Origin: Perkinsus chesapeaki ATCC PRA-425
Lineage: Eukaryota > Protista > Perkinsozoa
Assembly (NCBI GenBank): GCA_013115145.1
Contig: JAAPAO010000325.1
Coordinates: 1 to 39,659 of the forward strand
Direction: 5' to 3'
Length of the DNA stretch: 39,659 bases
Below, one piece after another: positions 489-38,910 of the stretch. Numbering within the stretch: position 1 is the stretch's first letter; every line of letters starts with the position of its first letter. The notes under the pieces were generated by a model. It was not told the DNA's origin, ran no database searches, and saw only the letters and a program-made list of their open reading frames with translations. The position numbers and the translations under genes were made by a program.

Positions 489-509
489 ATTGTGTAACAC
501 AATTGTGTT
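489..509. mobile_element. hAT-type excision footprint, near-canonical (1 nt short), inferred target ATTGTGTT
   Basis: ATTGTGT-A-ACACAA-T-TGTGTT. Confidence 0.6.
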
Positions 510-590
510 TGACTCGCAGTCCGCATGCTATCATGTCCCTTGATGCATGTATCTTTCCTAATCATAACAGTTAACACTTTCATCGAATCA

Positions 591-1422
591 ATGAGAGCGT
601 CTTTCATTATCTGTCTTATCGAAATTACTTACCAGATATCGATAAAATCTAACAATCCAATAACCGAGCTTTCTGCTGATGATCTCGAATACAGAGCGTT
701 GACCGCAAAGGAAGTTGGTTGCATTATCCCCAAAGGCTTACACTTTTTTGGAGGGGTTATGAATGGGAGTGGAAACTCGACGGTGGGCATAGCTGCATGT
801 CTATGTATAGGTCTGGTTGAGTTCAGATTGTAAAAGCGAAAGTGCATTCGAGATTGGGAGGAGAAGTACCCAAAATTGTGCTAGATAATCTGTAATGGAG
901 CCTTTGTTGTTCGGTCGGCCTACAGAAGCTTTCCTTCAACTATTTCAGTCCGAAAAAGACGAAGAATGATGATGTTGTGTATATATCATGGGTGTGGGTG
1001 GTTGGTGAGCTCTGGAATAGAAGGATAGCATCTAAGATGTTACCATTGGCCCTAGAGGATGTACGTCATTATTATCATTATAACGAATTAACTCCTTTTA
1101 TAAGATACGACGTAAATGGCCTAATGTGGTAGCAGCCTACTTAACTGTGAGTGAGAGTGCCGAGTATGCTACTAGGCTGTACAAGAATAACAACTTCACT
1201 ATCATACCGGAGCCAGGTAAGCCAGGTTACATAAAGCACATGGAGGTGCCATATTTCTGTAATATCTTGCTATTTGCTCGTTATCAGGCAATGATCCTAT
1301 CAAACTATACATCTATAAATTCCCCCTATGTAGTAAGAACAAGAGAGAGAGCCCTCTCTCGCGGTTATTCAAGGGAAAAAGTCTCAGAGGCGATAAGGAG
1401 TGATGAAGGTGTGACTGTATGA
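591..1422 (+). CDS. Putative secreted GNAT-fold acetyltransferase-like protein, paralog 1 (multi-exon)
   Basis: Manual splicing with introns 783-826, 892-948 and 1061-1104 gives an open frame. N-terminus MRASFIICLIEITY is hydrophobic. Motif A-like VVYISWVWVVGELWNRRIASKML and motif B-like AYLTVSESAEYATRLYKNNNF are present. The 3' end is uncertain. Confidence 0.8.
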
Positions 1423-1528
1423 ACACGGTCTACGGGCCATGATCTTCGATCAGATGTAGACCATACGAAAGGATGCCATCCAACTCCTGCATTCTATCAT
1501 ATTTCTATGATGTCTACTTCTTAGCTTA

Positions 1529-1566
1529 TGCCGGGTGTTGCCGGGTGTTGCCGGGTGTTGCCGGGT
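1529..1566. repeat. 10-bp tandem repeat (TGCCGGGTGT) x3.8
   Basis: Read directly from the sequence. Confidence 0.95.
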
Positions 1567-1733
1567 TCTATCCTCACTAGCACCCTCCCCAATATGGTAT
1601 TGGCGATATATCCGTTGTGACTGTAGACTTCACTGTTAATAATGTAACTCTATGCTCCATCCGTTACATGCAACATATTGTCTATCTCCCCGTCATCTTG
1701 CGTATAATTATTATCTAATAAGGAAGTGTACGG

Positions 1734-1769
1734 TATATTCATCTCAGATGAATATAGATGAATCATCTG
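1734..1769. mobile_element. hAT-type excision footprint with extended left arm, target TTCATCTG
   Basis: TATATTCATCT-C-AGATGAATATA (11-bp arms) joined to AGATGA-A-TCATCTG. Both central bases are complements of the target's end bases. Confidence 0.75.
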
Positions 1770-3005
1770 TGTTCCAATTAATAAATGACGCATATAGCAT
1801 GGGTTTGTGGTACCGCCCCACATAACAGCTCTTACATACTACACATTAACGACACAACTGTTAAATGACCTGCGACTCTCAGGCTCTACCAGCTCACCTT
1901 GTAACCCCAAGTGAAATCTTCCAGAATGTTGAAACTTTGAGGATGAGCCTGCGACGTATCCAATCCTGATACTTCGGATTCCGAACTATCAGAACAAGAG
2001 GGCTTCAATTCTTGCACACAGAGAACGAAGTATATGTATTAGATATCATGTAAGTCTCCTACTATGGCGACTTGAAACCACACATTTTAGTCATGTTATA
2101 CTGTTTGGCATATAGTGTTTAATAGTTTCGAGTACTCAATTGCGAAATTTCACCGTCAAGCTACGACAGCAACATACTATCCCGAAAGTGTACTCAAACT
2201 AAGCGTCTGAATTTATAAAACCGGGGCATCTGAAATGAGCTACAGCTCCTTGACGCGCAAGATCCCACAAGAGCTTTTTAATTGTATGAATGAAAACCGT
2301 GCCTCGTTACAATGGGTAACCCGAAGATACATTGCACTACTGGTTAATAAAGTTACGGTATTCGAATATTATGTTTATTGGGGCTAGGGTCACTAATACC
2401 GCAGTACTTGATTTTTTCTCACAGTTATTCTGAGGATTTTGGTATGGTTACGCTACGTTAGAGAGGATCCCTCTCATATTCATGGAATAACTCATATAGG
2501 AGCTCAATACGAATCGTTACATTGCTGAAAAGTCTCGGAAGATTTCTAAGCTCCATGAGATGCCGTTTAACCCTAATTAATCCTACGTTTACGCGTCTAG
2601 CTAAGTGACAAATCAATAGATATTGCTGATTAGAAGACTCCAGTATGTTTCACCTATATAGTAGAGTTTTACTAGGTTGCTCCATCGCCTAGAGCGTCGC
2701 TACTTAGAGTTCCTGCCATCCAGGACTATTCTCTTTTGTTGCAGACATGGAGCAACGCGCAGATCGGTCCATGCGCCGCGCTCCTCCTAGGATTATCGAC
2801 TGGCGCCTGGCACCGTGAATCTTTACAGTTGGGAGGATTCGCTGCTATCAACTATTTTCCTTGAGATGCTTTCTATAGTATCATCTCTCAGTGGAAAAGG
2901 GTGGCTTCGCACACGATATTGGGGAACGTCTTGTATATGCGGCCAAGCATTCTAGACTGTCATTCACAGAATCTTTAGTTTTACATCTATCTTACGATCT
3001 GCCCA

Positions 3006-3212
3006 ATGATCAACTATATCTTCTTAATCGTATGCTTCTTGCTGCTGGCTTCGCTCAGAGCTCCTGAGGGTGCTTCGTTGACCTGCCAGGTCTGCCTAAA
3101 CTGCATCCTCCACGAGAAAGAAGAAAGGAGTGAGTTTTGCGACAATACAATAAAAAAGTGTGGTAGAGGTCCCCATTACCAACCCTGCACATGCTGTGAT
3201 CTCCGCACATAA
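3006..3212 (+). CDS. Small secreted cysteine-rich peptide (68 aa, 8 Cys after the signal peptide)
   Basis: Single-exon ORF with signal-like MINYIFLIVCFLLLASLRAPEGA, followed by C-x2-C-x2-C-x11-C-x6-C-x8-C-x-C-C. Confidence 0.7.
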   Translation: MINYIFLIVCFLLLASLRAPEGASLTCQVCLNCILHEKEERSEFCDNTIKKCGRGPHYQPCTCCDLRT

Positions 3213-4251
3213 AAGATATTATCACTATAGGTCTGGTATCATGATATGAGAGTCTAGTAAAGCTTCTAGTAATCAGTCTAGAAGTTATAGTAGACTCAAC
3301 GATCATCAGGCACGTGAACAAGCTAGTGATGTTTATGTTGTGCCTTGCGGCACGCCGCATCCTACAGTCCTATGTGTTAATCAATGACCGTAGGATATCC
3401 TATTCCCGTATCATTTACGATAGTAATAATACGGTGTCAGCAGTACTGTTTCGTTTCATTTCCTCTCTCGTGTTTTAATCGTGGATAACCACAGGCTAGA
3501 GCTAGTTTCGTCAAACTAGACAATGTGTGTGTCCCCGCTCAAATAACACCAGCACTAGCACTTGGAGTTGCTGCTTTACGGTACATAGAATAGCCTGTAC
3601 TACGCTCGGTTGTTATTATCAATGTTATGTATAGCCAATGTTTGCCGCTCTAGGGCTTATCGAACGAAAGTGTAACCCGTGCAGAACAAGACCAATCGAA
3701 ATGCAGAATGTAACATCCACTTGGATGCAGTGAGTCAGACTTCTCCGAACCTCGGAGGCCGAAGCGAGCAGTGTGATAATGGAAAGTCGCAACTTGTGAT
3801 CAGCGCCATCAGCCTGTTAACGCTAGTTACATTCTATCTCAGTGAGCCATACAGTGACAATCGCACTACAGTATTTAGCCTTTCTCGGAAGTTCCACCTA
3901 GAATTGATAGACTAACCGAACCGTTTTCGGTGTTAGAGTAGGTTCAGTTTTTGCGCTGCATTCAGAGATATAATCCGTCTGATCCCAAGATCACGAAAGA
4001 GGTGACGGCCGACGTGTGTTCTCATAGCCTTGTGCGAATTACGCTAGGGAAGTGGACCGAGGCTTCGTTCAGCTCAACGCTAGATCTGCTCGATGCTTTG
4101 GATGAAGGCTCATCTGCTGAGAGCATAAAAGTAAGGAAGAAGGATAACAACAAGGTGAGGTAACGTCAGAAAACGTCGATCGAGGTTACCTCAATAGCAA
4201 TGTGATCTTATGACCCAAATAATGTAACCAGTATAACACTAATACAACGAT

Positions 4252-4503
4252 ATACCCTTACTGAGTATTGTCATGCCCTCCGTGATATTATTGATACTTA
4301 TGCTTCATTATCAGACAGTGTGTTTAGTTTCTAGTATAAACCAAATCAGATCAAAGTGTTAATTGAATCTCAGTTACACACTCAACAGTATAAACACGAG
4401 CACGCCATAGATTATTACGAGACGAGACAGCAAAGCCTTAGCTGTCTCTATACAAATATCGCTCAACTTCGAGCGAAGGAATGGTCAAAGCCAGCAGTAG
4501 TGT
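4252..4503 (+). repeat. Diverged duplicate of about 196-445 (upstream region of GNAT paralog 1), with roughly one minisatellite monomer
   Basis: Colinear match including the GAGACAGC-9nt-GCTGTCTC hairpin. Both copies lie upstream of a GNAT paralog. Confidence 0.9.
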
Positions 4504-4641
4504 ATAAGAGAGTGGATGATATTCACGAGCATGGTATTAAACCCTAAAATGAAGTTGACACCGTTAAACGAGGATGAATGTGAGTCCAGCTGTGCTTACA
4601 CAATGCGACTTGTTCTGGAGCCCGTTCAAGTGCTCAACTGT

Positions 4642-4703
4642 TCCGAGTTCCGAGTCTGAGTAACTAGCTCCGAGTTCCGAGTCCGAGTTCTCCTAATCCG
4701 AGT
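4642..4703. repeat. Cluster of about 7 CCGAGT-like motifs
   Basis: TCCGAGTTCCGAGTCTGAGT...TCCGAGTTCCGAGTCCGAGTT...TCCGAGT. Confidence 0.8.
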
Positions 4704-5328
4704 ACTTCTGTGTTCAAGTGCAAGTTGCACTGTGCAACAGCTCGGAAAGGAGGGTCTTCCGAGATGTTTGGCTGAGTACTCGAACTGGGTTTCTCTGAAC
4801 TACGCTTCAGTAGCTACACGACTTTTCGGTCGGTTTTGTCACTTACGTAGTTGATTTACATTCTGTTAGGGCTTCTTCTTAGTTACCGAATATACCGTTA
4901 CAAGTATAAGATCTCGGCCTAGAGTCAGACTCTGAAGTACATGCCGGACTTGAATAATCATAACGGATCGTGGACTCTTCATTCTAGTGTCTGCTCGTGA
5001 ATGAGGGAGTATGTTTCGCAATTATATGTTAAATCAGATGTTTTTTCTCTTCAGTTTTGGGTTGGTCTTCGTCTCTTGTCTACGGCATTAATGCATTACT
5101 ATACTACTACCATTTTGCCTTTTTTCAAACATCGGATGAATGCTACGACTCCCATGTATAGTTTATTTGAGAATGAAAACCATAACACTACAGAAGACGC
5201 GTCACATGCAGAGGCTTATCTTGCATCATTGACAGATTACTTATCGTACACCTTTATTTATTTGTCTCATCGTGTTCTGGATTGCGTGCATTTTGCTCAT
5301 CAGGACAGTTCCCATTCTTCCATTATCA

Positions 5329-6195: not shown

Positions 6196-6820
6196 AAAGA
6201 TAACCAAAACTTCCCAAGTTACACCGATCACAGTCTGGCTATGAGCGCTAGCACAACTTCGCCATCGGAACAAACCCTCACCAATACACCGTCAGCTTAA
6301 TATAATTACAGATGTCATCATAGGATTTGTCTATGATTCATTTTCAGGTTGTTCTTATAACCCTAGTATCTTCCCAAACAGTCTCATTGACTATAATCCC
6401 GGGACATTATCCTTTTGTCATTTATCACGCACTGTGTATGTTATGCTGTGACTTGTCCATTTATACAACAGTTTTGAGTAACAAGACTGGCACCGTGTGT
6501 TACTCCAGTCGATTTGAGTTTCGAGCGGGTCGGATAACTCTACGATGCTCAAGGCATCATTCTGATCCATGAAGCCCGAGACGCTCATTGCTTGATTGAG
6601 ATAGGTGTTCGGTAAGATTGTTGATGTAGAGAGTTTACAATGTTACCACGAGTGGCGAAATGCATTCCAATAGATGGTATTTCATTTCAAGTTATCGTAC
6701 TCAAGAGATGCTCATAACGTACTTATCTACTGCCACAAAACTCTCACTAATTGTGGGACGTTAGGTATGATTCTTGTTACTAGATCCATCATAACAGCTG
6801 TCATCCTACTATCATTATTA

Positions 6821-8013: not shown

Positions 8014-10312
8014 ATGTCTAATATTGAGGATCGTATAGCTGCCCGTCGGAAGAATTATAAAAAGGTAGTACGGCCCTGACTGTTGTTGTTAGTTGTATAT
8101 ATTATTATAGACTGGTGATACTGATGATATTAGACGTAGAAGGGAGGATGAAACAGTACAGATTAGGAAAGCTGAAAAGGAAAAACAATTAGCTCAAAGG
8201 AGAAGGATGAGTATTGGTGGTGATACTAGTGCTGGTCCTAGTAATAATCAATATATATATATATATATTATTAAACACATATTATAATAGGTGGATCCAC
8301 TACTACACCAGTACCTAATCTACAAGAACTTAGTGAGGCTGTTGCTGGATGCAACTCTAATGATCCAGTAGTACAATTTAAAGCTACACAGTATGTTAGA
8401 AAACTATTATCAATAGAAAAGAACCCACCAATTGAATATGTAATATTAATATATATAATATGTATATAACCATAAGTATTAGGTTATAGAGGCCGGCCTT
8501 ATACCGAGAATGGTTGATTTCCTAAAAGATATTAATCGTCCCGATTTACAGTTTGAAGCTGCTTGGGTATTGACTAATATAGCTAGTGGTACTAGAGCAC
8601 AAACTGAGGCAGTTGTATCTGCTGGTAATAATAGTATCTATCATTAAGTACATATTATTATTAAGGTACTATACCTGTCTTTATTGCATTATTATCATCC
8701 CCTAGCCTTGATGTTAAGGAGCAGGCAGTATGGGCTCTTGGTAATATTGCTGGTGATTCCCCACCATTACGTGATACAGTAATAATATATAGCATTGCTG
8801 TATTATTAAGGTAGAAGTTGATAGGTCCTTCAAGCTGGTGTTATGCAACCACTCCTTGCTTTATTAAGGGAGAATGATAAGTTTTCATTATTACGCAATG
8901 CTACCTGGGCATTATCTAACCTATGCCGTGGTAAACCTCAACCACCACTTGAAATGATAGTACATGCTTTACCAACATTGAGTAATCTACTATATAGTAG
9001 TGATGTAATAATAATAATTAGTGTTATAAGGAGTATATTAACCTATTAATAGGTTGAGGTATTAACTGATGCTTGTTGGGCATTATCTTATATATCTGAT
9101 GGTCCTAATGAACGTATTGAAGCTGTTATAGAGAATGGTGTATGTCGTAGATTAGTTGAATTACTTAATCATGATAGTACACTAGTACAGACACCAGCGT
9201 TACGTAATATCAATTATTAATATCATTTAATGATAAAGTGAATAATACTAGGTACTGTTGGTAATATAGTAACAGGAGATGATAGACAGACTCAGGTTAT
9301 AATACAATGTGGTGTGGCTGAGAAACTACATCAGCTTTTATATAGCCCTAAAAAGGTAAGGAATATCATCTACATCATGTGGGGCGGGGGATCGAGTGGT
9401 TGTTCTGATAGAATATACGTAAAGAGGCTTGTTGGACTATATCTAACATTACTGCTGGTAATCGTGAACAAATACAGGAGATAATCAATGCTGGAGTAAT
9501 AATAATAAGTGGAGTAGTAGTAAGGTGATGATGATGATGGTTGTGGTTAGATACCTAGTAAGATAGTTGAGTTAATGGCTACTGCTGAATTTGATATTAA
9601 AAAGGAGGCAGCATGGTAATAGTGTTACAAAAGGGTTGTTGTTGTTTTATAGTGGATATGCTATTATTATATTAGGGCATTATCTAATGCAACTACGGGT
9701 GGATCACCAGAACAAGTGGATTACTTTGTACAAGCAGGATGCATTAAACCATTATGTGCATTACTAGATGTTAATGATACACGTATAGTTGGTGTATGTC
9801 TGGAAGCATTAGAGAATATACTAAGGGTAATAACAATAATAATAATATAATGGGAATTACAATCTAGGTTGGTCTACAAGCAATGGAAGCTAATCCTAAT
9901 CTTACTGAGAATCCGTAAGATTATAAGGCATATTAGTAGCAGTAGTGGTTATATAGGTACCTACAGTTGGTGGAGGAGGCTGATGGTTTAACTAAGATAG
10001 AGAACTTACAATCAGATAGTAGTGATGAGATATATTTAAAGGTAAAAGGAGTGTTATAGATAGGTAAATAGTATTAGTGTTATTAGGCGGTGAGAATATT
10101 GGAAAACTATTTCCCGTTAGAAGGGGACGATGATGAAGTTGAAGATATGGAAGCTTCTGGGAGTGATTCGGCAACTGCACCACCTACTGGTGGTAAAAAT
10201 AATTATATAATATTGTTCCTATACTAGTGCTGTATTATTAGGCTTTAACTTCGGCGGCCCAAGTCCATCTGGCCCACCACCTGGGGGCTTCCAATTTGGT
10301 GGTGGAAACTAG
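8014..10312 (+). CDS. KPNA: Importin subunit alpha (karyopherin alpha), multi-exon
   Basis: IBB motif [16 protein letters not shown] repeats [56 protein letters not shown] and [14 protein letters not shown]-terminus FNFGG...GGFQFGGGN*. Confidence 0.97.
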
Positions 10313-18764: not shown

Positions 18765-20888
18765 ATGATACGTCGTGATTTACCAAAAGGAGCAGCATCA
18801 TCATTATGGCGAAGGCTACCATGGCCTAAATCAACGTTATATACTGCAGTAGACTATTTAGGTGTACCTGGTTTAAGGAAACCTAAAGACTTCCCAACAT
18901 TGGCAACAGATGCTGTTAATGATGCTAAGAATATATTAGGAGCATGGAAAAAGGATGATTCACCTCATAAAGTGGTTAAGATGATTGATGGGGTATCCAA
19001 CTCATTATGTAGAATTGCTGATGCTGCTGAATTAACACGTAATGTACATTCTGATGACAAATGGGTTAAAGAAGCTAGTGAAGCTGTTAATATAGTTGCA
19101 CAGTACATGAGCGAGGCTAATGTTGATAGTGCATTATATGAGAAATGTGTACCTGCTGCTGATAGGGCTGATGATAATGATAGTGGATGCAGTAAAGAGG
19201 AAAAGGACGTAATTAAAGCAATGAGGGAAGCTATGGAGAATGAAGGAGTACATTTAGATGATGATAAGAAAAAGGAATTAATATCACTACAAGAGCAGGA
19301 TGCTGTTAAAAGTTATGAGATAGTTAGCTTTGATGATAGTAATGATCCATTGGATGATGGGCAATGGTTAAGTGTACCACAAGAATGGATGAGTATATTA
19401 AGATTGTTACCTAAGAGGACTATTCATAAAGATGTTACAGAAGTATTCCTACCAAAAGAGCATGCAGCTGTTGGTTACTTATTAAAGGCATGTGAAGATA
19501 CGAGTGTTAGACATAAAGTGTGGAAGTTAACACATAAAGGGGAGCCTAAGAAGGAGAAGGCCTTGAAGGATTTAGTGGCTATTAGACAGAATCTGGCTAA
19601 GATAAGAGGATATGATACATGGAATGAATATGTTATGAGAGAATCTATATTATCTGGTAGTAGTGCAGTTAAAGATTTCCTATCGGAGCTTTGGATTGCA
19701 TTATTACCGGGATTAGAGAGAGAGCTTAGGCTACTTGAAGCTTTAAAGAGGGTACATACTAGTGATCCTAATGCTACCCTAGAACCATGGGATATTGATT
19801 TCTATGTATCTGTATGGAAGCAGACTAATCAACCAGCTGCACTTCAGGAGCTTGGTAGTAATCTATCTATTAATTCACTTATTGAGGGCTCTCAAAGGGT
19901 ATCATCATCAGTATTAAGGGTTAATATGAAAGAGAATATTATTAAAGGTGAAGCATGGAGTTATGATGTTAGAAGGTTTGAATTTAGTGATGCTAAGAAT
20001 AATGACCCTTATGGTATATTATACCTAGACCCTTGTGAGAGGGCATGGAAGAAGGTACAATCAGCACAGTTTACTATAGCAGGTAGTTGTATATTACCTG
20101 ATGGTAGTAGGCAATTACCACGTACTGCTATGGTACTATCTTTACCAGAATTACCAGGAGCATTAGGTCAAGGTGCTGCTACTACATATATGCATGAGTT
20201 TGGTCATGCGGCTCATTCTATATTATCGAGGACTACTTTACAACATTTCAGTGGTTCACGTGGTTGTATTGACTTTGTTGAATTCCCCAGCCATCTGTTT
20301 GAATACTTCGTACTTGACCCTAATGCACTAAGTACGTACATGTTACCGAAACTATCAACCCAAGCTGTAAAAGACTATGGTGATTTCCGTATGGCATTTG
20401 GTCACATAGAGGCAGCTCAACAACTAATATATGCTTTAGTTGATCAAGTCTTCTATGCTCATGGTTATGTTGCTGATGATCTATCACAGTTCTTACCAAA
20501 GTCATCTCATCAGACTACAGTAAGTAATGAACGTTTTATTGAATTGCTAAGTCCACCTGGACAAGCTCAATTCTCTCATCTGGTTCATTATGGTGGTAAT
20601 TATTATTGTTATTTACTATGTAAAGCTGTTGCAGCTGATGTATGGTCACGTGGTGGTTTTGCTGGTAGTAATGATGGTGCTGCTGATCCTATGGCCGGTG
20701 AGAGATTAAGGCATTTCCTGGAAGCTGGTAGTGTTACACAAACTATGGATAAGATATATGAATTAGTTCCTGAGGGACGTATTAAATCATCTAGTACAGC
20801 ATCATCATTAACAGCTGGTCATGTACCATTAGGACCTCTAATGGGGTTATTAAATAGTTGTACTGCAATACATGGTATTAGTAGGTAA
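18765..20888 (+). CDS. MIPEP: Mitochondrial intermediate peptidase (peptidase M3A), single exon, 707 aa
   Basis: HEFGH zinc motif, GSRGCIDFVEFPSHLFEYF, FSHLVHYGGNYYCYL, and a basic presequence-like N-terminus. Confidence 0.93.
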   Translation: MIRRDLPKGAASSLWRRLPWPKSTLYTAVDYLGVPGLRKPKDFPTLATDAVNDAKNILGAWKKDDSPHKVVKMIDGVSNSLCRIADAAELTRNVHSDDKWVKEASEAVNIVAQYMSEANVDSALYEKCVPAADRADDNDSGCSKEEKDVIKAMREAMENEGVHLDDDKKKELISLQEQDAVKSYEIVSFDDSNDPLDDGQWLSVPQEWMSILRLLPKRTIHKDVTEVFLPKEHAAVGYLLKACEDTSVRHKVWKLTHKGEPKKEKALKDLVAIRQNLAKIRGYDTWNEYVMRESILSGSSAVKDFLSELWIALLPGLERELRLLEALKRVHTSDPNATLEPWDIDFYVSVWKQTNQPAALQELGSNLSINSLIEGSQRVSSSVLRVNMKENIIKGEAWSYDVRRFEFSDAKNNDPYGILYLDPCERAWKKVQSAQFTIAGSCILPDGSRQLPRTAMVLSLPELPGALGQGAATTYMHEFGHAAHSILSRTTLQHFSGSRGCIDFVEFPSHLFEYFVLDPNALSTYMLPKLSTQAVKDYGDFRMAFGHIEAAQQLIYALVDQVFYAHGYVADDLSQFLPKSSHQTTVSNERFIELLSPPGQAQFSHLVHYGGNYYCYLLCKAVAADVWSRGGFAGSNDGAADPMAGERLRHFLEAGSVTQTMDKIYELVPEGRIKSSSTASSLTAGHVPLGPLMGLLNSCTAIHGISR

Positions 20889-21057: not shown

Positions 21058-21708
21058 ATGGGCGTGGCTGCTAGTAGCCCTCAAGTAATACCACCAACTA
21101 CTAGCAATGGTGATGCACAGCAGCAGCAGCAACCATTAACTGAATCTATATCGAAAGGTAGTATATAGAGGGGGAAGGTCGAGGCGATAGGGTCGATGTA
21201 GGTAATACTGTGGGTTTAAAAGAAGGTGAGGATGATGGTAGGGCGATGGAGAGGAGGAGGATACACTTTTGTGAGAATACCAATGATACTAATAATATAT
21301 GTAATGCACAATGGATGATGGTAATAATAGTAATTATTATAATACTGTGTTGTATTATTAACCCTTTTATAGCTATATACAGCAGCGGCATATGCACCAG
21401 ATAGACTGACATCATCACAACAGAAGGTTTATAGTAACTTCTTTAATGGTTTTATTGATAGATGTGAAGATCCTATTATTGGTGGAATGATAGAGGATGA
21501 GATACAATCTGGTAGATCAGCACCTAGAGCTGGATCTAATAGGGAGATGTTGATATGGCTATGTACTATAGAGAATAGATGCAGGTAATAAATAGTATTA
21601 TTATAATCGATAGATCACTTTATTAGGCAACGTCTGGGCATGCCAATGGTACAATGTAGATCTAGTAGGTTATTACAACGATGGCGGTATCCTGATGGAT
21701 ACCTTTAA
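21058..21708 (+). CDS. ERV/ALR sulfhydryl-oxidase-fold protein lacking the redox CxxC (4 exons)
   Basis: Spliced product ...AQWMMLYTAAAYAPDRLTSSQQKVYSNFFNGFIDRCEDPIIGGMIEDEI...MLIWLCTIENRCRQRLGMPMVQCRSSRLLQRWRYPDGYL* aligns by eye to Erv1/ALR. The Cx16C motif is kept. Confidence 0.75.
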
Positions 21709-28226: not shown

Positions 28227-29769
28227 TCAATAACGAAGAGATGTGCCTCCTGGTATTTGTAGTAAGTCTTTAGATACAAAGAAGGAAACCCGATCGATAA
28301 GCCACAGTCGGAACAAAGTTTTGCATCCAGCATTGTCGGAGCATTCGGTGGCTAGAGGAGACCGCATTGGAATTCAATTAATTAAGCAAGTTTCCTGGGC
28401 AGCTACTTCGGCACTTGTGTAACACAAGTTCGCCTATTGGGGGCACACGTTGTACATCTGAACTGGCCAAGTCTATACTATACACGGCAAACACATCCTG
28501 CTCTTACCGACTGATAACGCGCAATGTTGTACTTCGAAACCGGCGAACATGAGGGGATGCTAAGTAGTTTTAGATGAGCTTGGAATTTAAAGATAAACTC
28601 AGAGATTGAACTTATAGATGAGCTTCAAGACTATTGGCCTATTTGACGGTTCCGGTAAAATTATCACCTAGGTCATACGATTTTACAGAGCATCAGACAG
28701 AATCAGCAAGTTCCTCACCAAGAGGCTGGACTAAGGCTCTTGGAGCATGAGGCGGGCCATGCCTCTGCTCAACAGGTGCAACAAGGGCTTTATCATGCCC
28801 ATCTGCAGCTCCCTGTTGTCCTGACCAGACTGAAGTCAACCAAACAGACAAAGATGCAGTTAAGAGATTAGTCAATATGCATAAAGGCTCACAGGTCGTG
28901 AGTCACAACCGTAATATATTATAATACGCATAATTTTGATGTGCCATACAGTACAATGCAGTATACATGTGGCGAATCCCTGTTGGACTCAACGATCATC
29001 GTATTAAGAACACCTGATTCAGGCTCCACGTTTGGATCTCAATGGAGTTCCTCTGAATATCGGAGAGAAGTCCTCTGAACTTACCAACAAAATCGTGCCT
29101 TATATAGGTCGATTCTTCAGAGTGTTAGTATATGTATAAATAACGGTGGTGGACCATCGAAATCTACAGAAGCTCCTTCAAAGAAGAATGAACCGAGAGC
29201 TTCGTATGACCTTGTCTAGCGTTCGAGAGGATATTATTAGATGATACCACTTCCACAGATAACAACATTCACTTATGAGCTATCCTTGAAAATGTATACT
29301 GTATGAAGAACTATTAGACGTATACAAAACATCAGTGGATACATTAGACAACGAAGTTGCAATTCCTTGCAACTTTCAGGTTTTCCAAACCAGCTTCCTT
29401 GGATTGCCACAGATCTGAATAATGATGCGTCTTATACCAATCCATAAAGGCTATAGTCAGTATTTTACAGATATCTATACTATCTATACCTAAGGACTAA
29501 TCATAATAATGACTCATAACTAACGATCAACGGAACCAATCAAACTTGGTGAGGACTTTGCCGATAAAGCTTTGCGCTCTGTCCAACAACGTCAGACTCG
29601 ATTGTTGACCCGTCAAGGTTTGACCGATGCGTACCCATAATTGACAACACTTCACTGTTAGAGCATAGATGTTAAATTCCCGACGCTAGTAGCTTGAACT
29701 ACTGCGATTGTATAGAAATATGCTCTGATAAAAAGGATGCTGCAACAAAGGCTTGGTTTTATCTTGGAT

Positions 29770-30373
29770 TCACTTGGCATACCAAACGCAGTCAATGGTG
29801 AGGCTCCCATCAAGAACGCAACGCATGCCTATTGGACACTTCTTGAAATACTGAAAAATGACATGCTTTCGAAATGATTACACTATGGAAAATCCTACCG
29901 CACAGCCTAAACGACAGAGACCATCGTTACCACAATATTGGTTGGCATTCCCATTGGGCGGGCCCGGACAATCAGAATTGCGTGAACATGCTTCACTGCA
30001 GAAGCATACGAGTGTATCGTATCCTACCACGTCCAATACTGGATACCAGCCGGGCTGACAACTACAACCGCTTCCGTCACAGTGACCAACTGGCTCCGCA
30101 TAAGGAACTGATTAAGAAAACTGGCTTACATAAATTCGCTGAATACAGGATACTTGCGATTTTCAGAGGCAGTTCTCCATACCTGTGGGCGGCTGGGTCA
30201 TGGTGGTCATATTGGTACCTCCGGGCCCCTCTTCGGAGTTCATCCTGATCGAGAAGATACTTCAAGTCCATCAAAGAGGCATACTACTTTTGCATACTAC
30301 TTATTTCCTCTAAACTACTGCCGAAGCTTCCTAGAATGCTGATGATGAGAATGATTCTCATAGTATACGTCAT
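29770..30373 (-). CDS. Secreted cysteine-rich protein, copy A (5 exons including a probable 9-nt micro-exon)
   Basis: MTYTMRIILIISILGSFGSSL...MNSEEGPGGTNMTTMTQPPTANLFGHCDGSGCSCQPGWYPVLDVVGYDTLVCFCSEACSRNSDCPGPPNGNANQYCGNDGLCRLGCAYFKKCPIGMRCVLDGSLTIDCVWYAK*. All introns are GT-AG. Confidence 0.88.
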
Positions 30374-30433: not shown

Positions 30434-30820
30434 TTATCGTCTATTACTGGCAGTCAGTTCCTGACTAGAACGAGGCAAATGGTCACAAGGTTGCACACTG
30501 CCGCTTACACAGCAGGTGCCTGAATAACAGCGTGATGCTGCAATGACAATCCAAGATTGGAGATGCTTAATTTGGATTAACTTGCAAGTGAGTACACGGA
30601 AAGAATGCAGAAGGGGCTTTAGCTCACCGATCGCCTTTGTGACTTCGGAGATGTCACAGACTGAAGCGTGCACATCGTGCAGCACATTTAGTGGTGGCGT
30701 TGTCGTGGGTCCAGAGTGCCTACAAACTTACCAGGTCAGTTATAAACAATAAAGCCTGCAAGTTTACCCAGCATGGTGATCTTCGAACATCGGTCCTGGG
30801 TGAAGTCAATGAAAGAGTTT
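30434..30820 (-). pseudogene. Possible degenerate spliced gene upstream of the Cys-rich gene; paralog at about 32670-33075 has a stop and a frameshift
   Basis: A GTRAG donor and AG acceptors are shared by both duplicate units. Copy A exon reads SRCYSGTCCVSGSVQPC. No start codon was resolved. Confidence 0.3.
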
Positions 30821-30835
30821 GCACCTGGTGACACA

Positions 30836-30857
30836 GTATTGAGTCAATACTATTGAC
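30836..30857. mobile_element. Perfect +14 hAT-type excision footprint, target GTATTGAC
   Basis: GTATTGA-G-TCAATA-C-TATTGAC. Confidence 0.85.
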
Positions 30858-31835
30858 TTAATACTATCAAGTGAGTCAGGCCGTGACTGTTGCGGCTAGA
30901 GCACCTGATGCCAAGGTGGGGTTCCCAGCAGTTGGGCCAAAACTTGACCGCTAGTCACGAATCAACTTAACAACAATAAGACATACGAAAACGCGTAAGT
31001 GGCCTTCTACCAGCGAGTTCCAGGATTATCGACGCCAAACACTTAATTAACACCCCTCCTATTATTATTCTATAGCGACTCCGGACGCCCAAGGGACAAT
31101 CCTGGCCGGGCGCACATGCTCTTTTCAACGCGGTCGAAAACACTCTTGAGACAGCCCTCACGAACACCTCTGGGAGTATACTGTCTTGCAGATTTCTCTT
31201 TTGGGAAGGCTATTGTCAATAGGCTGTTGAGCTTCAGGTGAGGACCGTTGCATAGCCTGAATCCTATCTTGTCTATATTGGAGTAGTCTCTTTGATCTGG
31301 ATTGGCCATTCTGGGCACCACCGATATTTGCTGTGGAAACGCACCCGCGTGTTGCGTGACAGTCTTCCCCGTTGCTGATACTATCAGAGCCATATTCTCT
31401 GATGATTATTATCGGCGCATCATCGCGTGTTGCTCTCACACGAAGCAACTGCACAAACCGCACCACGGTGCTCAGACCGAGGAACACGTGTTTATCAGTA
31501 GATTATGATCCTGCCCGTGTGAGTGGGTCCCCGAGCTCTGTGGAGTTTGGAAAGCTGCTCTGCGCGCAGAGTGCACTGCTCACAGTTATAAGGTGAGCGA
31601 GACCGAGGAGAATGCGCTCGGTCTTGGTGCCACCAAGTTCTACCAACTTGGTGGTTACGAGAAGGAGGGAAACACATCCGCTAACCCCGTTAAGTAATCC
31701 CAACCAGCTTCAGAGGCTGAGCTTTTCAGGCAGTCCGCAAAGACAACAGGTAGCGAATAGCTACTAGCTATAGATGAGGGTTATAATGAGAGTCATCATG
31801 AAGGTCCTGGTGCACTTGTTCCCATAAATTGCGCA

Positions 31836-31975
31836 CCCATAAATTATGGCTCATAATTGACAACGCATTACTGTCGGAGCAATGCTCCGGGAGCATGGAT
31901 GTCAGAATCTAACAGTTTGATTCCTGACGCTAGTAGCTTGAACTACTGCGATTGTATACTATATACAATGTATAG
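31836..31975. mobile_element. Four consecutive excision footprints (31836, 31875, 31900, 31952)
   Basis: 31875 is perfect: CGGAGCA-A-TGCTCC-G-GGAGCAT. All four are absent from the paralogous segment 29634-29715. Confidence 0.88.
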
Positions 31976-32032
31976 AAATATCCTCTCATAAAAAGGCTTC
32001 CATTGCAACAAAGGCTTGATTTTATCTTGGAT

Positions 32033-32631
32033 TCACTTGCCGTACCAAATGCAGTCAATGGTGAAGCTCCAATCAAGAACGCAGTGCATGCCTATTGGAC
32101 ATGTCTTGAAATGCTGAGAAGTGGCATGCTTTCGGAATGATTACACTTTCGAGAAACTTACTGCACAGCCTAAACGACAGTAACCATCGTTATCACAATA
32201 TTGGTTGGCGTTGCCGTTGGGTGGTCCCGGACAATCAGAATTGCGTGAACATGTTACACTGCAGAAGCATACGAGTGTATCGGACCCTACCACGTCGCAT
32301 ACTGGATACCAGCCGGGCGAACAAAAGCAACCGCTTGTTCTACAGTGACCAACTGGCTCCGCATAAGGAACTGATTAAGAACACTGGCTTACATAAATTC
32401 GCTGAATACAGGATACTTGCGATTTTCAGAGGCAGTTCTCCATACCTGTGGGCGGCTGAGTCATGGTGGTCATATTGGTACCTCCGGGCCCCTCTTCGGA
32501 GTTCATCCTGAAAAAAGATACTTCAAGTCCTTCAGAGAGGCGTACTACTTTCGCGTATGGTTTCCCTCCAAACTAATACCGAAGCTTCCTAGGATGTTGA
32601 TGATGAGAATGAATCTCCAAGTGTACGTCAT
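32033..32631 (-). CDS. Secreted cysteine-rich protein, copy B
   Basis: MTYTWRFILIINILGSFGISL...FGHCRTSGCFCSPGWYPVCDVVGSDTLVCFCSVTCSRNSDCPGPPNGNANQYCDNDGYCRLGCAHFKTCPIGMHCVLDWSFTIDCIWYGK*. Same introns as copy A. Confidence 0.88.
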
Positions 32632-33050: not shown

Positions 33051-33072
33051 CGGTTCTCAGGACCGAGTCCTG
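33051..33072. mobile_element. Aged +14 footprint (2 transitions), target CGGTCCTG
   Basis: CGGTTCT-C-AGGACC-G-AGTCCTG. The empty site CGGTCCTG is at paralogous 30791-30798. Confidence 0.75.
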
Positions 33073-33613
33073 GAGTCCAGTGGTGGTCCACGACCTGGAC
33101 CACCACGCCGATCCAAGATGGAATCAGTAACTCGGTGATACAATAAAAATTGATTCACGTGAATTTCACGCTGAGTGCATATGATTGCTAGCTTTTGACC
33201 GCTAGTGTAGACCCAGCTAGAGAACCTACTACAGTGCGACAGCGCCTGACTCAGTGGATTACTGAGGAACCCTCAGTGAGGGTGTCGAATTAACACTGTT
33301 AATCAAGAGAAAATCCGGCACTCAAGGGGCGCGCCTGATCGAGCGCTGGGGTTCTCTTTAACGCGGTCGAAAGCACCCGAAGAGACAGGTTACAGGAACA
33401 CTCCTGAGAGTATTCTATCTAAAACGATCTTCGGATGCCTCCCTTCGGTGCGCTATTGTCAAACGCCAATTGAGCCTCAGGAGAAATCCGTCACACAGCC
33501 TGATTCACTCGTTGTGTGTCCACATTGTGTCTCTGACATTCGGAATGTCGGGAATGTCCACATTCCCGTCGAGCGTCGTGACCGATAACACTATGATGGT
33601 GTGTCAGTCGAGA

Positions 33614-33635
33614 GTCAAGGGCCTTGACTCAAGGC
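33614..33635. mobile_element. Perfect +14 footprint, target GTCAAGGC
   Basis: GTCAAGG-G-CCTTGA-C-TCAAGGC. Confidence 0.85.
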
Positions 33636-33798
33636 GATCGCGAACAGGATGGTTCGAGATACGAATCGTATCATACGAAGACTATAGTGCGACACGTTAA
33701 CCGACAAAATAGCCATAAACTTGAATGACAAAACTGGGCATGCTCATTCGCCGCATGCTCCTTTGCTAAATACCTTCTGAATTTAGGGCTCAAGGAAG

Positions 33799-33846
33799 GC
33801 TTTCTCACGATGATCGTGAGAAAGCTTTCCTGATCGTGACACGATC
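33799..33846. mobile_element. Long-arm footprint, target TCACGATC
   Basis: GCTTTCTCACGAT-G-ATCGTGAGAAAGC (13-bp arms), followed by GATCGTG-A-CACGATC. Confidence 0.8.
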
Positions 33847-34148
33847 GAGATCCCACAGTTAAGCGCACGCTTCTGACCATCCTGCATGTACGACAATATA
33901 AAGTCATTTTCGAGCAGTCAAAAGGTCATGTTTCACGTGTTGGCCATGCTAAGCCACCAGCGGTGGAGCCCAAGGATCGCGGAGTGCTTGAGCTAGCCAT
34001 ACTAGCTCTTCTTGCAGGCAAAAGCGCGTCTCAGCAATCAGTAGCGGAGAAATCCGCAAGGCGTCATAGATAGCACTATTGCCCCTCCCGAAGGGGCAAT
34101 ATTGCTTACGAAGTAGCTCTAAGCGCTGGTATCTCCTTAGTATCTAGC

Positions 34149-34170
34149 ACTGTGAGTCACAGTCTGTGAC
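34149..34170. mobile_element. Perfect +14 footprint, target ACTGTGAC
   Basis: ACTGTGA-G-TCACAG-T-CTGTGAC. Confidence 0.85.
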
Positions 34171-34373
34171 AGTGCCGCTGCCCCACAAAAACTCCAAGTG
34201 AAATTCGTGGCATAGCCAGGACCAGCTAGTGCCTTTCCGGTCAGCGCGATCCGCTGTTGATGCATAGAATCCTTAGGTGGTCTTCGCTCGAGACCACCTC
34301 GGGTAAATAGAGATGTAGAGTAAGATGAAGATTAGGAGGGGCTAAGTATTACTAATTTTTGTGTACTCATATG

Positions 34374-34454
34374 ATATGAGTGTCGTACATTAAGATTTGG
34401 TTCAGTTGATTTCGTACTCCTCGAACTCGTACACCCGATGGCTCGTACACTTAT
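34374..34454. repeat. About 81-bp inverted copy of 38967-39048 (GTGTACGA motif array)
   Basis: Reverse-complement match with 1 substitution and 1 indel. Confidence 0.92.
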
Positions 34455-35067
34455 ATGAGGTTATTTAGCACCCAGTGGAAAACTATATAAAAAACTTTTT
34501 CTAAAAAATGCCGCATGTTTTCAATGCGTGAAAACCGTCTAAAGTAGATACTCCAATAAAAACTAACATTAATAAGTCGTGTTTTGCATTGTGTCCCTCC
34601 ATTTGATCATTTATAAATATAAAATAGTAGTGGGTTATTGAGTATGCATTCCTAATGACGAGCATCATCCACACATTTTATGAGGAAAATTGTCTCTTCT
34701 CATTAGGCGCTGCGAATGGTAATACAAACAATGACCGTGAAGAGGATCACTACAATGATCACGAAAGTCATTCGTCTCACTCAAGCCGTGGAGGTAAGTT
34801 AGCGCTACGAATGCTTCACTCTTGGAACAACGACTTGCAACTTTCTTCTTTTTCGTACTTTCAAACGAATCCATTCCTTGCTATTTTCATACACCACGTC
34901 TACTGTTGGCTCGACAACCATGTTTGTATTATATAATGTTCTTTACTATTATAAAATACAAGTAATCCAAAGTAGTGGCAGTAAGTTGATGAACTGGTCA
35001 TGACTCAATCAATTAGAAATGAAGAATTAAGTTAGAATGGTTATCAAGTTAAGTTATCAAGTTAGAA

Positions 35068-35110
35068 TGGGTCTATTAGAAACCCTCATACCAGGTTTCT
35101 AATAGACCCA
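35068..35110. repeat. Perfect 17-bp inverted repeat with a 9-nt spacer
   Basis: TGGGTCTATTAGAAACC-CTCATACCA-GGTTTCTAATAGACCCA. Confidence 0.95.
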
Positions 35111-35135
35111 GCATGTTCTGTGGATGTAACGAGCG

Positions 35136-35330
35136 TGGACGAATTGCTATTGGACGAAAAGATCATGTACGGAACGCGCATTGTCAGCATATCTTTGCAT
35201 GAAGCAAGCATGAACGAAACAATCGTGGACGAAACCCTAAATGGACGAAACAAATGTGTACGAAACGAGCACATGGATAAACTGCGATCTGGGCGAAACA
35301 ATCCTGGACGGAACATGCCATGGACGAATG
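35136..35330 (+). repeat. TGGACGAAAC motif array, about 11 copies, 15-17 bp period
   Basis: Motif starts at 35211, 35226, 35242, 35257, 35274, 35290, 35305 and 35321, plus earlier copies. Confidence 0.85.
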
Positions 35331-35562
35331 GCGGTACACCCGTCTATCAGGTTCTCTATGACTTTCCTATGATTTGTCTTAAAAAAATTGTGTTTTGAGT
35401 TGAGTAGATTCGGATACATGGTAACCACATAAAGCTCTAATGTTGCTACGGGCCGTTGCCTACGTCACACAGTCTTCTCAACTCGGCTCACTGTCTTGCA
35501 ATACCGGTTCATAGTGATTCACAGATTGTGTTATGCTCACTCTGGTAGGTGACCGCCTGCTA

Positions 35563-35768
35563 GGTGGATATCAGTAGGGAACTGAAAAGTACGAGCGACT
35601 TTCGGGTACTCCGTTGGATCCAGTTGAAGTTTCGTCAGTTCTAAATCTTATGTCGAATCCACCAACGTGAAGCTATATTCATTGAAGCACCGCATGGGTG
35701 GTGCAGAGCTCGCGTACATTGAAGCACTCAAATATGCGTTAGAAGGTCTGCTTGCTCTGTTTTTTATT
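35563..35768 (+). repeat. Dispersed repeat R1, copy 1 (copy 2 at 38482-38738)
   Basis: Near-identical apart from a 51-bp palindromic insertion in copy 2. Confidence 0.95.
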
Positions 35769-36228
35769 GCCATTATGAAGTTTGCAGTTGACGTTTAGTG
35801 GCGGTCTAGGAATGTCTGGTAATTCGAGTTCTACTCGGCGTACCCGGCCGTATGCTGCTCTTCACAACTTGAGACCTCATGAGTTGTCCCAACATTTCAG
35901 GGAGAAGGAGAAGCACCAGAAAGGGTGGTGGAACATGTGTTCCGGATACTAGGTTGGAATATGTCTTTCATACAATATGAGTATTTGCTGAGAGGGTTTT
36001 GCAGGATGCTCCTGGAGGTACCAAGGTTGTTAGTTTTCGACAATGATGTAGTTATAGCGGGAACGGAAAGGGACGACTCGCTGTAGGTATGAGTATACGC
36101 CTCACGTTTCCGTTTTTGTTCAGATATCTCGATAATGTACTCATTCTGGGAAAAGTTCTCTGCGGGCACTATCAGTTTCACGCACTCGTCTTGTTTTACT
36201 CGTACTTCAGCAACTCCTCCTTCCACGG

Positions 36229-36250
36229 TTATGTCCGACATAATATGTCG
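36229..36250. mobile_element. Perfect +14 footprint, target TTATGTCG
   Basis: TTATGTC-C-GACATA-A-TATGTCG. The empty site is at 39464-39471. Confidence 0.92.
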
Positions 36251-36378
36251 AGTCCGTCTACAACTGCGGGCACTCAGTTAAGTCTGAGGTGGTTTCACTC
36301 CAGCGTTACCGCGGAGTACTATTTCGTAGGTATAAATGATGATATTGAAGTTACCCTATGGGCATTCTTAACTGTTTG

Positions 36379-36400
36379 ATGAAGAATCTTCATTGAAGAT
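36379..36400. mobile_element. Perfect +14 footprint, target ATGAAGAT
   Basis: ATGAAGA-A-TCTTCA-T-TGAAGAT. The empty site is at 39600-39607. Confidence 0.92.
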
Positions 36401-36978
36401 GCATCGGTTGACGGAGGTAGCTCAGAGACAGATGATGAAGATCTTCGTTACTACTATTTACAAGGTTCAAGTGATGGCGAAGAATTGGTAATTACCGGGG
36501 AAAACTCATGCCCGTTAACTGGCGAGAAGAGAAGATTATGCCGAGTGTTGTAAATAGCGTGATCGATAAAACTTTTATCATAAAAGGCGACCGCGAAAAA
36601 TGAAATAGACACGCATACACAAGTTATTTCATCTTTAACTCATGTCAAACCATGTATTTGCTTACAGAGTCTGCGAGGAGGTCCGATACGACCTAGTCAA
36701 AGGGAGACCTTTACAGTTACCCAGGTATTTCATATTCTCGACTTATTAGTTTATTACTTTTGACGGCTAATCCAGTCTCTTCCATTAGTGCTTTTGGAGG
36801 TGAGACCCTGTTTTTGCGTCGAAGTTCTCTTTTTGTGTCCTCAGGTCTAACTAGACTATCGGACGTCTTGGCTTTTTCTCGTCATTGTAACGAGTTGGGT
36901 ATTGAAAAGACGAGAGAACTCGTGGAGTTGGTGAGGAGACTCGGGTTCACCCAGGTTCTTCACATATTGAATACGGAG

Positions 36979-37000
36979 GAGGGGAGTCCCCTCAGGGGAC
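36979..37000. mobile_element. Perfect +14 footprint, target GAGGGGAC
   Basis: GAGGGGA-G-TCCCCT-C-AGGGGAC. Confidence 0.85.
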
Positions 37001-37170
37001 CCCTGTTCGTACAGTTATTGTACTGTCCCTTCCACTGTTCTACGGGACAGTATTTGCATTCTCGCTCGCCCTATAACATAAGTATCTCGCTCGCCCGAGC
37101 TAGTTCGTGCACACTATTATAAATACATATAAATAAACTCTCCATATCTCTACCTTCTGTTGTGTCACTC

Positions 37171-38330
37171 ATGTCCGACAACGAGTATATGTTTGACTGT
37201 GGACGTAAGTGCGACTGTGTAGTGATATTGTTTAAAGTATTCTTGATTTAGCGAAAACGGGAGGGGAAACCCTAGTTGACGAGGCTGTCGCGGACCATCC
37301 TCTTGTGCAATCGCTGGGATCCCGGGCGAGAAGGCGTGTTAAGTTAACTTCTGGCCGATCTAAAGTGAATATTCTTTAGGCATGTAAAGTAAGATTCGTG
37401 AGAATTTAGGTTCTCTCCCCTCTCTCCTCTTCTGCTGCTCCTAGTAAGTTACCGGAGGTGAAATTAAAACAGGTAGTGAAGTGTTTGTGCACCATCTGGG
37501 TATATCGAGTAGGTATCTCGTAATCCGGGAGTAAAGGCCACGAGGGGTATAACTCAAGTGGATGACGACAGTATCGCTGTCGAGGAAGGGGGCAACTCGT
37601 GTCGGAGTGGTAAGGTACAAGTTCTTGGTTCCTCCTAGTATTGAGATCTCTGTATGGCAGTTGCCTGAGGACGGAGTTGTGCCAACCCATGCCGTCTACG
37701 ACGGGATTCCATTGGTACGCTTTATGGTTGACGATTGTAGGAAGTTTGTTGTTAGCCTAAGCGGAGGTATGGAAGCTCTACTGGGATGTATGGCACGATA
37801 GCATCGGTAAGACTCGGGTAGCCTGGTTTACTGTTAGCTTGTTGTGAAAGGGTCAAGATTGAAGCTGAGATGTTGGAGATGTCATGCTGTGTACTATGTT
37901 GGTTCTGTGTTTCGAGATGATAAACGTGATTTTTAGTTGGACTTTGTGTGAGGGAATAAGTGACACTACGGTACTGGTATTAGTAATAAAATACATCGCC
38001 AATTGGGTGTTTGGGGGTAAGTGTAAAACAAGAAACCTGGAGACTTCCGAAAATGGAATGCTCAGACTGAGCAGCTCAGTATGGGAACACAAAACAAGCA
38101 CTGCTCCAGAAATACTGATATATCTAGCTCAATTGGAATCCTCACCTTAACGGAGAGCTTGGGTGTGCGTTCGTTAAAAGTTATACTTACCGTAGTATAT
38201 ATTGACTTGAACATTCCGGATTACTCTATTACTTTTGACGGTCAAAGACACCTAAGGTACACAAGTAGCTTTGGGAGGTCTTACAAAGTGTACATCCAAC
38301 TTGCCTGGTTATTTTTCTCCACAACGGATG
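37171..38330 (+). pseudogene. Degenerate spliced gene with a CxxC/Tyr cluster; possibly a CxC-domain (KDZ/Zisupton-associated) relic
   Basis: ATG at 37171 and about 6 clean GT-AG introns give MSDNEYMFDCG...LKLRCWRCHAVYYVG. After that come stops and frameshifts, and YIQLAWLFF. The family assignment is a resemblance by eye only. Confidence 0.4.
38059..38080. mobile_element. Perfect +14 footprint, target TGCTCAGT
   Basis: TGCTCAG-A-CTGAGC-A-GCTCAGT. Confidence 0.85.
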
Positions 38331-38598
38331 ATGACGCATCCAGGTTCCTTCGGTTACTCGGTTTTACCGGTATCGTGCCATTGCTGTTGTCGTTGATGTC
38401 GTTGGGGTTGCTTTCGTTGTCGTTATTGTAGTCCACGGTGGCGGTGTCCGTGGTTGAGCCGCGGTTAGTTGGTTGACGCTGGGTGGACATCAGTAGGGAA
38501 CTGAAAAGTACGAGCGACTTTCGGGTACTCCGCCGGATCCAGTTGAAGTTTCGTCAGTTCTAAATCTTATGTTGAATCCACCGACGTGAAGCTATATT

Positions 38599-38697
38599 CA
38601 TTGAAGCACCGCATGGGTGGTGCACTGCACCACCCATGCGGTGCTTCAATGTACGCGAGCTCTGCACCAGGTGCAGAGCTCGCGTACATTGAAGCAC
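38599..38697. mobile_element. Long-arm footprint (double palindrome, 26-bp and 28-bp arms), target TGGTGCAG
   Basis: The empty site TGGTGCAG is at paralogous 35699-35706. Net gain is 51 bp. Confidence 0.9.
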
Positions 38698-38747
38698 TCA
38701 AATATGCGTTAGAAGATCTGCTTGCTCTGTTTTTTATTTCCTCATAC

Positions 38748-38769
38748 CACTAGACTCTAGTGACTAGAG
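38748..38769. mobile_element. Perfect +14 footprint, target CACTAGAG
   Basis: CACTAGA-C-TCTAGT-G-ACTAGAG. Confidence 0.85.
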
Positions 38770-38869
38770 CAATGCGACTACACAATTCAATGTCGCATTG
38801 ACTCAACATTGATCCCCCAAAAGTGCTAATTGCTCCGCCGGACAGACAAAGCTTGCCAGTTATGTCGCC

Positions 38870-38910
38870 TCTGGGGATTGAAGTTCAATCCCCAGAATCA
38901 ATCATTGAAC
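38870..38910. mobile_element. Long-arm footprint, target GATTGAAC
   Basis: TCTGGGGATTGAA-G-TTCAATCCCCAGA (13-bp arms), followed by ATCAAT-C-ATTGAAC. Confidence 0.8.

Follow-up and report, generated by a model that had tools for sequence, protein, structure and literature searches.

What process has written short palindromes, all built on one plan, into the DNA of Perkinsus chesapeaki? The question arises from contig JAAPAO010000325.1 of strain ATCC PRA-425, analysed over 39,659 nt (hereafter the window), in which an 8-bp word is repeatedly replaced by a 22-bp scar. An initial annotation, made from the letters alone, had attributed these scars to hairpin excision of a hAT-type transposon. We likewise regard them as probably being footprints left in the nuclear genome of Perkinsus by the excision of a cut-and-paste hAT transposon of the Ac/Hermes type. 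The geometry of the scars, their empty sites, their target bias, a decay series and their presence in three Perkinsus lineages are direct observations.

With W denoting the 8-mer target, each scar reads W[1-7]+revcomp(W)+W[2-8], where revcomp is the reverse complement; it spans 22 bp, adds 14 bp, and consists of two overlapping 15-bp odd palindromes. No sequence is common to the scars; the 8-mer at each site is the template for all the bases inserted there. Eleven perfect scars occur in the window against 0.0 in 20 dinucleotide shuffles, an enrichment repeated in 300 region-wise dinucleotide shuffles (11 observed, 0 expected at 0 mismatches) and in line with what the initial annotation had predicted. 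Because the excess over shuffles extends to forms with one mismatch (3 observed versus 0.013 expected), two mismatches (8 versus 0.30) and three mismatches (19 versus 2.4), decayed copies of the scar exist.

Scanning target lengths k=4-13, with d=0, 1 or 2 bases trimmed at each junction, returned k=8, d=1 as the single enriched class, so that the predicted unique peak at length 8 is confirmed. A single match was obtained at k=7 and none at k=9; k=8 gave no matches with d=0 or d=2, even palindromes (d=0) were absent at k=8-10, and k=9-13 yielded nothing under any trimming. Among 13 triplets of the form X-b-X'-c-X with a 6-bp core, both centres complement the outer target bases in 11 (chance 1/16), which upholds the proposed preference for complementary central bases. 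A generalised test for two odd palindromes with shared target logic at any spacing peaked solely at k=8 and recovered the variants at 1734, 33799 and 38599, while in the full tail-length matrix the anti-diagonal a+b=8 alone stood out. Joins with 3-7 palindromic (P) nucleotides are rare (489, 1491, 33153). The claimed dominance of the +14 product therefore holds among detectable products; beyond those, footprints with at most 2 P-nucleotides are inseparable from background.

Other footprint classes were considered and rejected. Excesses at d=0, k=4-7 and at d=2, k=5-7 proved to be the (AT)n tract at 8251-8270 and AT-rich strings, and short-tail direct-join classes lay at background except for triplet repeats in coding DNA. 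The matches to a Transib/RAG-type footprint (5-bp target-site duplication (TSD), even palindromes; d=0, k=5) were (AT)n and one AT-rich string. P elements also have an 8-bp TSD, and their terminal remnants stay at the donor site; the scars carry no element remnants.

The rule scan placed perfect scars at 4717..4738 (W=AGTGCAAC), 30836..30857 (GTATTGAC), 31875..31896 (CGGAGCAT), 33614..33635 (GTCAAGGC), 34149..34170 (ACTGTGAC), 36229..36250 (TTATGTCG), 36379..36400 (ATGAAGAT), 36565..36586 (GATAAAAG), 36979..37000 (GAGGGGAC), 38059..38080 (TGCTCAGT) and 38748..38769 (CACTAGAG), the last near the end of a high-copy repeat. All nine sites previously listed as perfect fit the rule, and those at 4717 and 36565 are additions. 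One-mismatch scars lie at 31750..31771, 33262..33283 and 33658..33679 (the last also in the triplet centre test), and two-mismatch scars at 31836..31857, 31900..31921, 33051..33072 (W=CGGTCCTG) and 33282..33303. The scar at 489..509 is short of one T and belongs to the class with a left tail of 7 and a right tail of 0, and that at 31952..31975 carries an extra TA (+16). Every site earlier called near-perfect is found among these imperfect scars save 35445, which has three mismatches to the rule and is weak.

Longer-armed variants occur at 1734..1769 (W=TTCATCTG; a left tail of 12 nt joined directly to a right tail of 6 nt, with the centre rule kept), at 33799..33846 (W=TCACGATC; a 13-nt arm, with snap-back filler GAAAGC/TTTC between the tails) and at 38599..38697 (W=TGGTGCAG, +51 bp at 38619; arms of 26 and 28 nt, the tails apparently annealed on CATTGAAG). 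At 33535..33566 both tails (8-10 nt) are kept, joined without annealing and with one extra C. These four stand from the initial list of long-arm cases; of the remainder, 31623 satisfies the rule in its first palindrome alone, and 38870 was rejected as a local scar, being a single 13-nt-arm hairpin within a high-copy repeat. Separately, the sequence following scar 36979 (36979-37005) continues as a zigzag, TCCCCT CAGGGGA CCCCTG, in a k=7 pattern, and a zigzag likewise runs on after scar 30836 (30843-30871); these continuations may be second events inside existing scars.

The scars are insertions into a single 8-mer, as comparison among paralogous segments within the window reveals: at about seven scar sites, other copies retain the plain single 8-mer. 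Segments 35981-36452 and 39216-39659 differ at 12 substituted positions and by a pair of gaps, each exactly 14 bp long and opposite a plain 8-mer, namely a single TTATGTCG at 39464..39471 facing scar 36229 and a single ATGAAGAT at 39600..39607 facing scar 36379. In an older tandem pair (29.6-30.9 kb and 31.8-33.2 kb; 16% divergence), in which each copy has palindromic insertions of its own, the counterpart of scar 33051 is a single CGGTCCTG at 30791..30798, that of scar 31900 is unscarred, and that of scar 31875, near 29659-29666, is one diverged 8-mer without insertion; the paralog of scar 31952 has a single TTGTATAG. Segment 38478-38741 exceeds 35559-35771 by 51 bp, with a single TGGTGCAG at 35699..35706 as the empty site. 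In this insert, 26 nt of left flank and ~22-28 nt of right flank appear as their reverse complements, joined on CATTGAAG, which is common to both flanks, and its centres follow the complement rule for W=TGGTGCAG.

A blind test was provided by short-read contigs X1. The window carries an empty site, CCGTCTAC, at 37692..37699; in one X1 contig, 14 extra letters after 37692 turn it into the perfect scar CCGTCTA GTAGACGG CGTCTAC. At scar 38748, repeat copies in runs X2-X4 (same organism label as the window, different sample) read ...TTATACC/ACTAGAG, consistent with the unscarred form, and these copies appear to be without the scar. Across four paralog pairs, all six indels of at least 10 bp are scars (6/6). 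Judged by the decay series and by lineage-specific gains in paralogs, the events are spread over time.

The targets themselves are biased. Among 28 independent target sites drawn from the window, the Perkinsus loci L001 and L002 described below and the X1 contig, T at position 2 or A at position 7 fills 27 of 56 positions against a background of 0.27 (p=6e-4), and 23 of the 28 sites have at least one of the two. TA at positions 4-5, a Buster-type preference, is not enriched among these sites. Position 8 is A in just 1 of 28 sites, and position 1 is T in 8 of 56 after symmetrising; this skew may be a further target or cleavage preference beside the element end. The T2/A7 bias matches the nTnnnnAn target preference of Ac/Hermes-type elements, Hermes producing 8-bp TSDs with exactly this preference (PMC10368747).

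Geometry and target bias together bear on two other origins. Template switching during replication or repair (quasi-palindrome or fold-back synthesis) would dispense with a nuclease cutting at an 8-bp stagger, can make inverted copies of adjacent sequence, and is favoured by the snap-back filler in some variants, such as 33799. It predicts, however, no fixed length, one-base offset, complement-centre rule or T2/A7 bias, whereas the scars form one sharp class, at k=8, d=1; we consider it highly improbable. Footprints of another hairpin-forming superfamily with 8-bp TSDs, for example Mutator-like or undescribed, would involve the same repair steps, and the Mutator-like element (MULE) Muta1 indeed makes hairpins on flanking DNA and 8-9 bp TSDs (PMC5499845). 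Nevertheless, MULE TSDs usually measure 9 or 10 bp, and neither k=9 nor k=10 gives a signal in the window; the Muta1 hairpin holds both flank strands in full (43+43 nt) and hence predicts even palindromes, absent at k=8-10; more than 90% of Muta1 excisions are precise; and the T2/A7 bias fits a Hermes-type hAT preference. A Mutator-like footprint (TSD 9-10 bp, range 8-11; full-strand hairpin) was rejected because its predicted classes are empty, and an origin in any such superfamily is in our judgement unlikely.

The scars also occur beyond the window. They are reproduced without differences in the X1 contigs, including those at 34149, 36979 and 38059 and, with 0 differences, that at 33614. 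In Perkinsus olseni, the 21-kb locus L001 holds two scars, one perfect (L001:14120) and one with a single mismatch (15193), and contig L002, from a third Perkinsus lineage (81% protein identity), holds two perfect scars in 8.9 kb. A P. olseni gene model spans the scar at L001:14120, which presumably sits in an intron or in a spacer wrongly joined into the model. Seven control loci (~128 kb), carrying the same gene in Amoebophrya and environmental eukaryotes, contain no scar with up to two mismatches. An assembly or sequencing artefact could still be suspected in that X1, which repeats the scars, may be the window's own source sample. Against this stand the recurrence of scars in three assemblies, each from its own project and two from other genomes, together with the point-mutation decay series, the paralogs that differ by exactly +14 and the scar-free control loci; we give an artefact practically no credence.

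Within the window, the perfect scars are unevenly placed: ten of the 11 are found between 28 and 39.7 kb and the eleventh within 0-7.6 kb, which leaves the gene-dense core free of them. This distribution follows the layout of the window, in which a conserved gene core (~7.6-28 kb) is bordered by two non-syntenic flanks. Selection against +14 frameshifts would give the scar-free gene core; that one flank holds ten times as many perfect scars as the other may be due to genes in the left flank or to local hopping. The core contains the sole long ORF (open reading frame) of the window (18765-20888), long ORFs being otherwise scarce; it encodes an M3 peptidase with 82% identity to a P. olseni protein, and 11.5-21.6 kb is collinear with P. 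olseni contig JABANP010000398.1. By this sequence evidence, the window is nuclear DNA of a Perkinsus species. A P. olseni gene model (L001:10001-14872, 950 aa) fuses the M3 peptidase with an Erv1/Alr domain; in the window the corresponding stretches are separate (18765-20888 and ~21245-21589). Scans of the window detected no tRNA genes and no Rfam families, and a similarity comparison with phage records gave no match. The right flank includes a tandem ORF pair (29874-30248 and 32137-32511; 124 aa each, 83% identical, no Pfam domain) within a 79%-identical duplicated segment that bears several lineage-specific scars. In 33400-38900, unique sequence has no match at 88% identity or above in runs X2-X4, where the repeats alone are found; this region seems to be strain-variable.

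If the scars are hAT excision footprints, the geometry suggests the following course, in which we infer the transposase family, the place of hairpin opening and the joining pathway. Insertion would duplicate the 8-bp target W. At excision the transposase would nick one base into each flank, the nicked-off base departing with the element, and each flank would close into a hairpin that bears the complement of the lost base at its tip (N1..N7-c8-c7..c1 on the left flank, c8..c2-N1-N2..N8 on the right), a course of excision already published for Ac/Ds and Hermes. In Perkinsus these hairpins would be opened on the 3' side, 8 to ~28 nt from the tip; any opening at least 8 nt from the tip would leave a top strand ending in c8..c1, that is revcomp(W), and a bottom strand ending in N1..N8, that is W. 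The two 3' tails, complementary over exactly 8 nt, would anneal, and after flap trimming and nick sealing would yield W[1-7]+revcomp(W)+W[2-8], a gain of 14 bp. The initial annotation had the tails anneal over a 6-bp TSD core; this detail has to be revised, as the complementarity of revcomp(W) and W covers all 8 nt.

Longer-armed variants would arise where tails are joined elsewhere, either directly (1734, 33535) or on other microhomology (38599), or with snap-back filler (33799). Tails of 8-28 nt imply that the hairpin is opened well away from its tip, for which a Mre11/CtIP-type cut would be expected over an Artemis-type one; our search of the literature on Perkinsus end-joining genes returned nothing relevant. 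Scars would persist where they are neutral, in non-coding and pseudogene DNA, and then decay through point mutation. Since each adds 14 bp, they break reading frames in relic genes.

Several observations count against a hAT origin. As the initial annotation had already remarked, the window shows no hAT transposase: a search of 51 ORFs in the flanks that bear the scars found neither its domains (DDE/hATC, BED) nor any other Pfam domain. Scans of the window for terminal inverted repeats (TIRs) paired with an 8-bp TSD gave no convincing element. Of the filled, empty and scarred states whose comparison had been proposed, the latter two were found, but neither the window nor the loci compared showed a filled allele, the orthologous non-coding DNA of other species being too diverged. 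Elements of the hAT superfamily are undocumented for Perkinsus in the literature we searched. The model predicts symmetry between T2 and A7, yet their counts differ (9/28 and 18/28). Published hAT footprints are heterogeneous, and none has one near-uniform full-length product (PMC3499496, PMC4423477). Because no transposase, 8-bp-TSD element or filled allele was found, the link to hAT transposons is drawn from geometry and target bias. The hAT hairpin model and rejoining on a duplicated target nonetheless fit the geometry, the odd palindromes, the empty 8-mers and the target bias.

Two candidate elements were evaluated and dismissed. Segment 3265-7544 is a weak candidate for an intact element (TSD TCTAGTAA, 12-nt TIR with 2 mismatches), but ~0.14 such structures are expected by chance and its ends fall in a local TCTAG-rich repeat; all other matches of the TIR and TSD scans were of low complexity. 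An 81-82-bp repeat (34374-34454 and 39048-38967), considered as a miniature inverted-repeat transposable element, is an internal fragment of a longer high-copy family and is without an 8-bp TSD. High-copy repeats at 35137-35330, 34374-34454 and 38736-39100 (minus strand) have 20-60x the base depth in Logan contigs; no copy of them occurs in the P. olseni loci. The first includes 8-9 copies of G[GT]ACGAA(AC) and the second four copies of TCGTAC; both arrays resemble the subterminal transposase-binding motifs of DNA transposons, with no ends or TSD definable. The 81-bp segment at 34374-34454 is flanked on both sides by ATATGAG (34374-34380, 34453-34459) and looks like filler DNA copied into a break via microhomology. 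An inverted repeat at 35068-35110 has 16-nt arms and a 9-nt loop, CTCATACCA. The string CCTCATACCA recurs at 38739-38748, immediately upstream of scar 38748 and on the border of the high-copy repeat.

The four paralog pairs also provide a rate, with 6-7 scars per 211 substitutions, or ~1 scar per 30 substitutions. If the genome measures tens of megabases and a per-site mutation rate of ~1e-9 to 1e-8 is assumed, each genome would by our estimate fix a transposition once in roughly 50-500 cell generations, which is ordinary for an active family. At this ratio, neither the very high turnover nor the domesticated mutator nuclease invoked by the initial annotation is required. A mutator independent of any transposon, in which a domesticated hAT/RAG-like nuclease or other endogenous enzyme cuts ordinary DNA and the hairpins are repaired to the scar, does gain from the failure to find an element or transposase near any scar and from the local density of 10 perfect scars in 11.7 kb; hairpin-making domesticated hAT transposases exist, such as Kat1 (as cited in PMC10368747). 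However, the product needs W on both broken ends, and an insertion with target duplication supplies W twice while a simple cut does not. The ~1:30 ratio is within reach of ordinary transposition, and the target bias equals that of transposon integration. Such a nuclease is thus quite unlikely, and excision of a hAT transposon remains the reading that we prefer.

Comparison with known hairpin systems places the Perkinsus scar more precisely. V(D)J coding ends (RAG, Artemis) likewise have the hairpin on the retained DNA, and off-tip opening gives palindromic additions; these are 1-4 nt long, against 8-28 nt in Perkinsus. RAG nicks at the exact border and so produces even palindromes, Artemis opens the hairpin within a few nucleotides of the tip, and joining proceeds by classical nonhomologous end joining. 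Hermes shares the 8-bp TSD, the target preference and the flanking-DNA hairpins, and the odd palindrome of the scar fits a first nick one base into the flank, where Zhou et al. reportedly placed it for Hermes in 2004. Muta1 resembles it in flank hairpins and TSD length, and differs in its mostly precise excision and full-strand hairpin.

The closest parallel is provided by Ac/Ds footprints in plants, S. cerevisiae and C. albicans, which share the 8-bp TSDs, microhomology where the ends are joined, and P-nucleotides that form odd palindromes about the complement of the base next to the element (PMC5873905). In yeast, arms reach up to 20 nt and microhomology is usual, according to the account of Lazarow 2012 and Yu 2004 given in PMC5873905. 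Ac/Ds footprints are nevertheless heterogeneous and mostly short, with 28 types in 128 Candida events and arms of at most 3 nt (PMC5873905), whereas in Perkinsus one product, that of full 8-nt tail complementarity, covers nearly all detectable events and is a standing feature of a wild genome rather than an assay product. Hairpin footprints of hAT elements were already known; what is new is that the product is so uniform and that it abounds as a standing feature of the genome. Our literature search found no publication describing the scar.

A broader proposal, which we advance tentatively, is that Perkinsus as a genus may open hairpin ends far from the tip (Mre11/CtIP-type), possibly with weak or absent classical end joining, and join them by annealing, so that every hAT excision would leave the same +14 scar. 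The scars would then form a complete, datable and countable record of transposition and the main source of insertions of at least 10 bp in non-coding DNA. We know of no genome that shows a uniform hAT excision scar as such a record.

Normally, DNA transposons leave footprints so small and varied that they go unrecognised in a genome, and past cut-and-paste activity cannot be counted. In Perkinsus, by comparison, each event seems to be marked by 22 bp that a rule can locate; the mark can be dated by its decay and polarised against empty sites. With such scars, the sequence itself would reveal the rate of transposition over time, the choice of targets and any local hopping. If they are indeed hAT footprints, the one-base-offset hairpin chemistry of hAT transposases is confirmed outside the laboratory. 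The pattern further suggests an unusual preference in double-strand-break repair in a non-model alveolate, which bears on genome editing in Perkinsus marinus, for which CRISPR and transfection now exist (PMC8062965; bioRxiv 10.1101/2021.06.11.447996).

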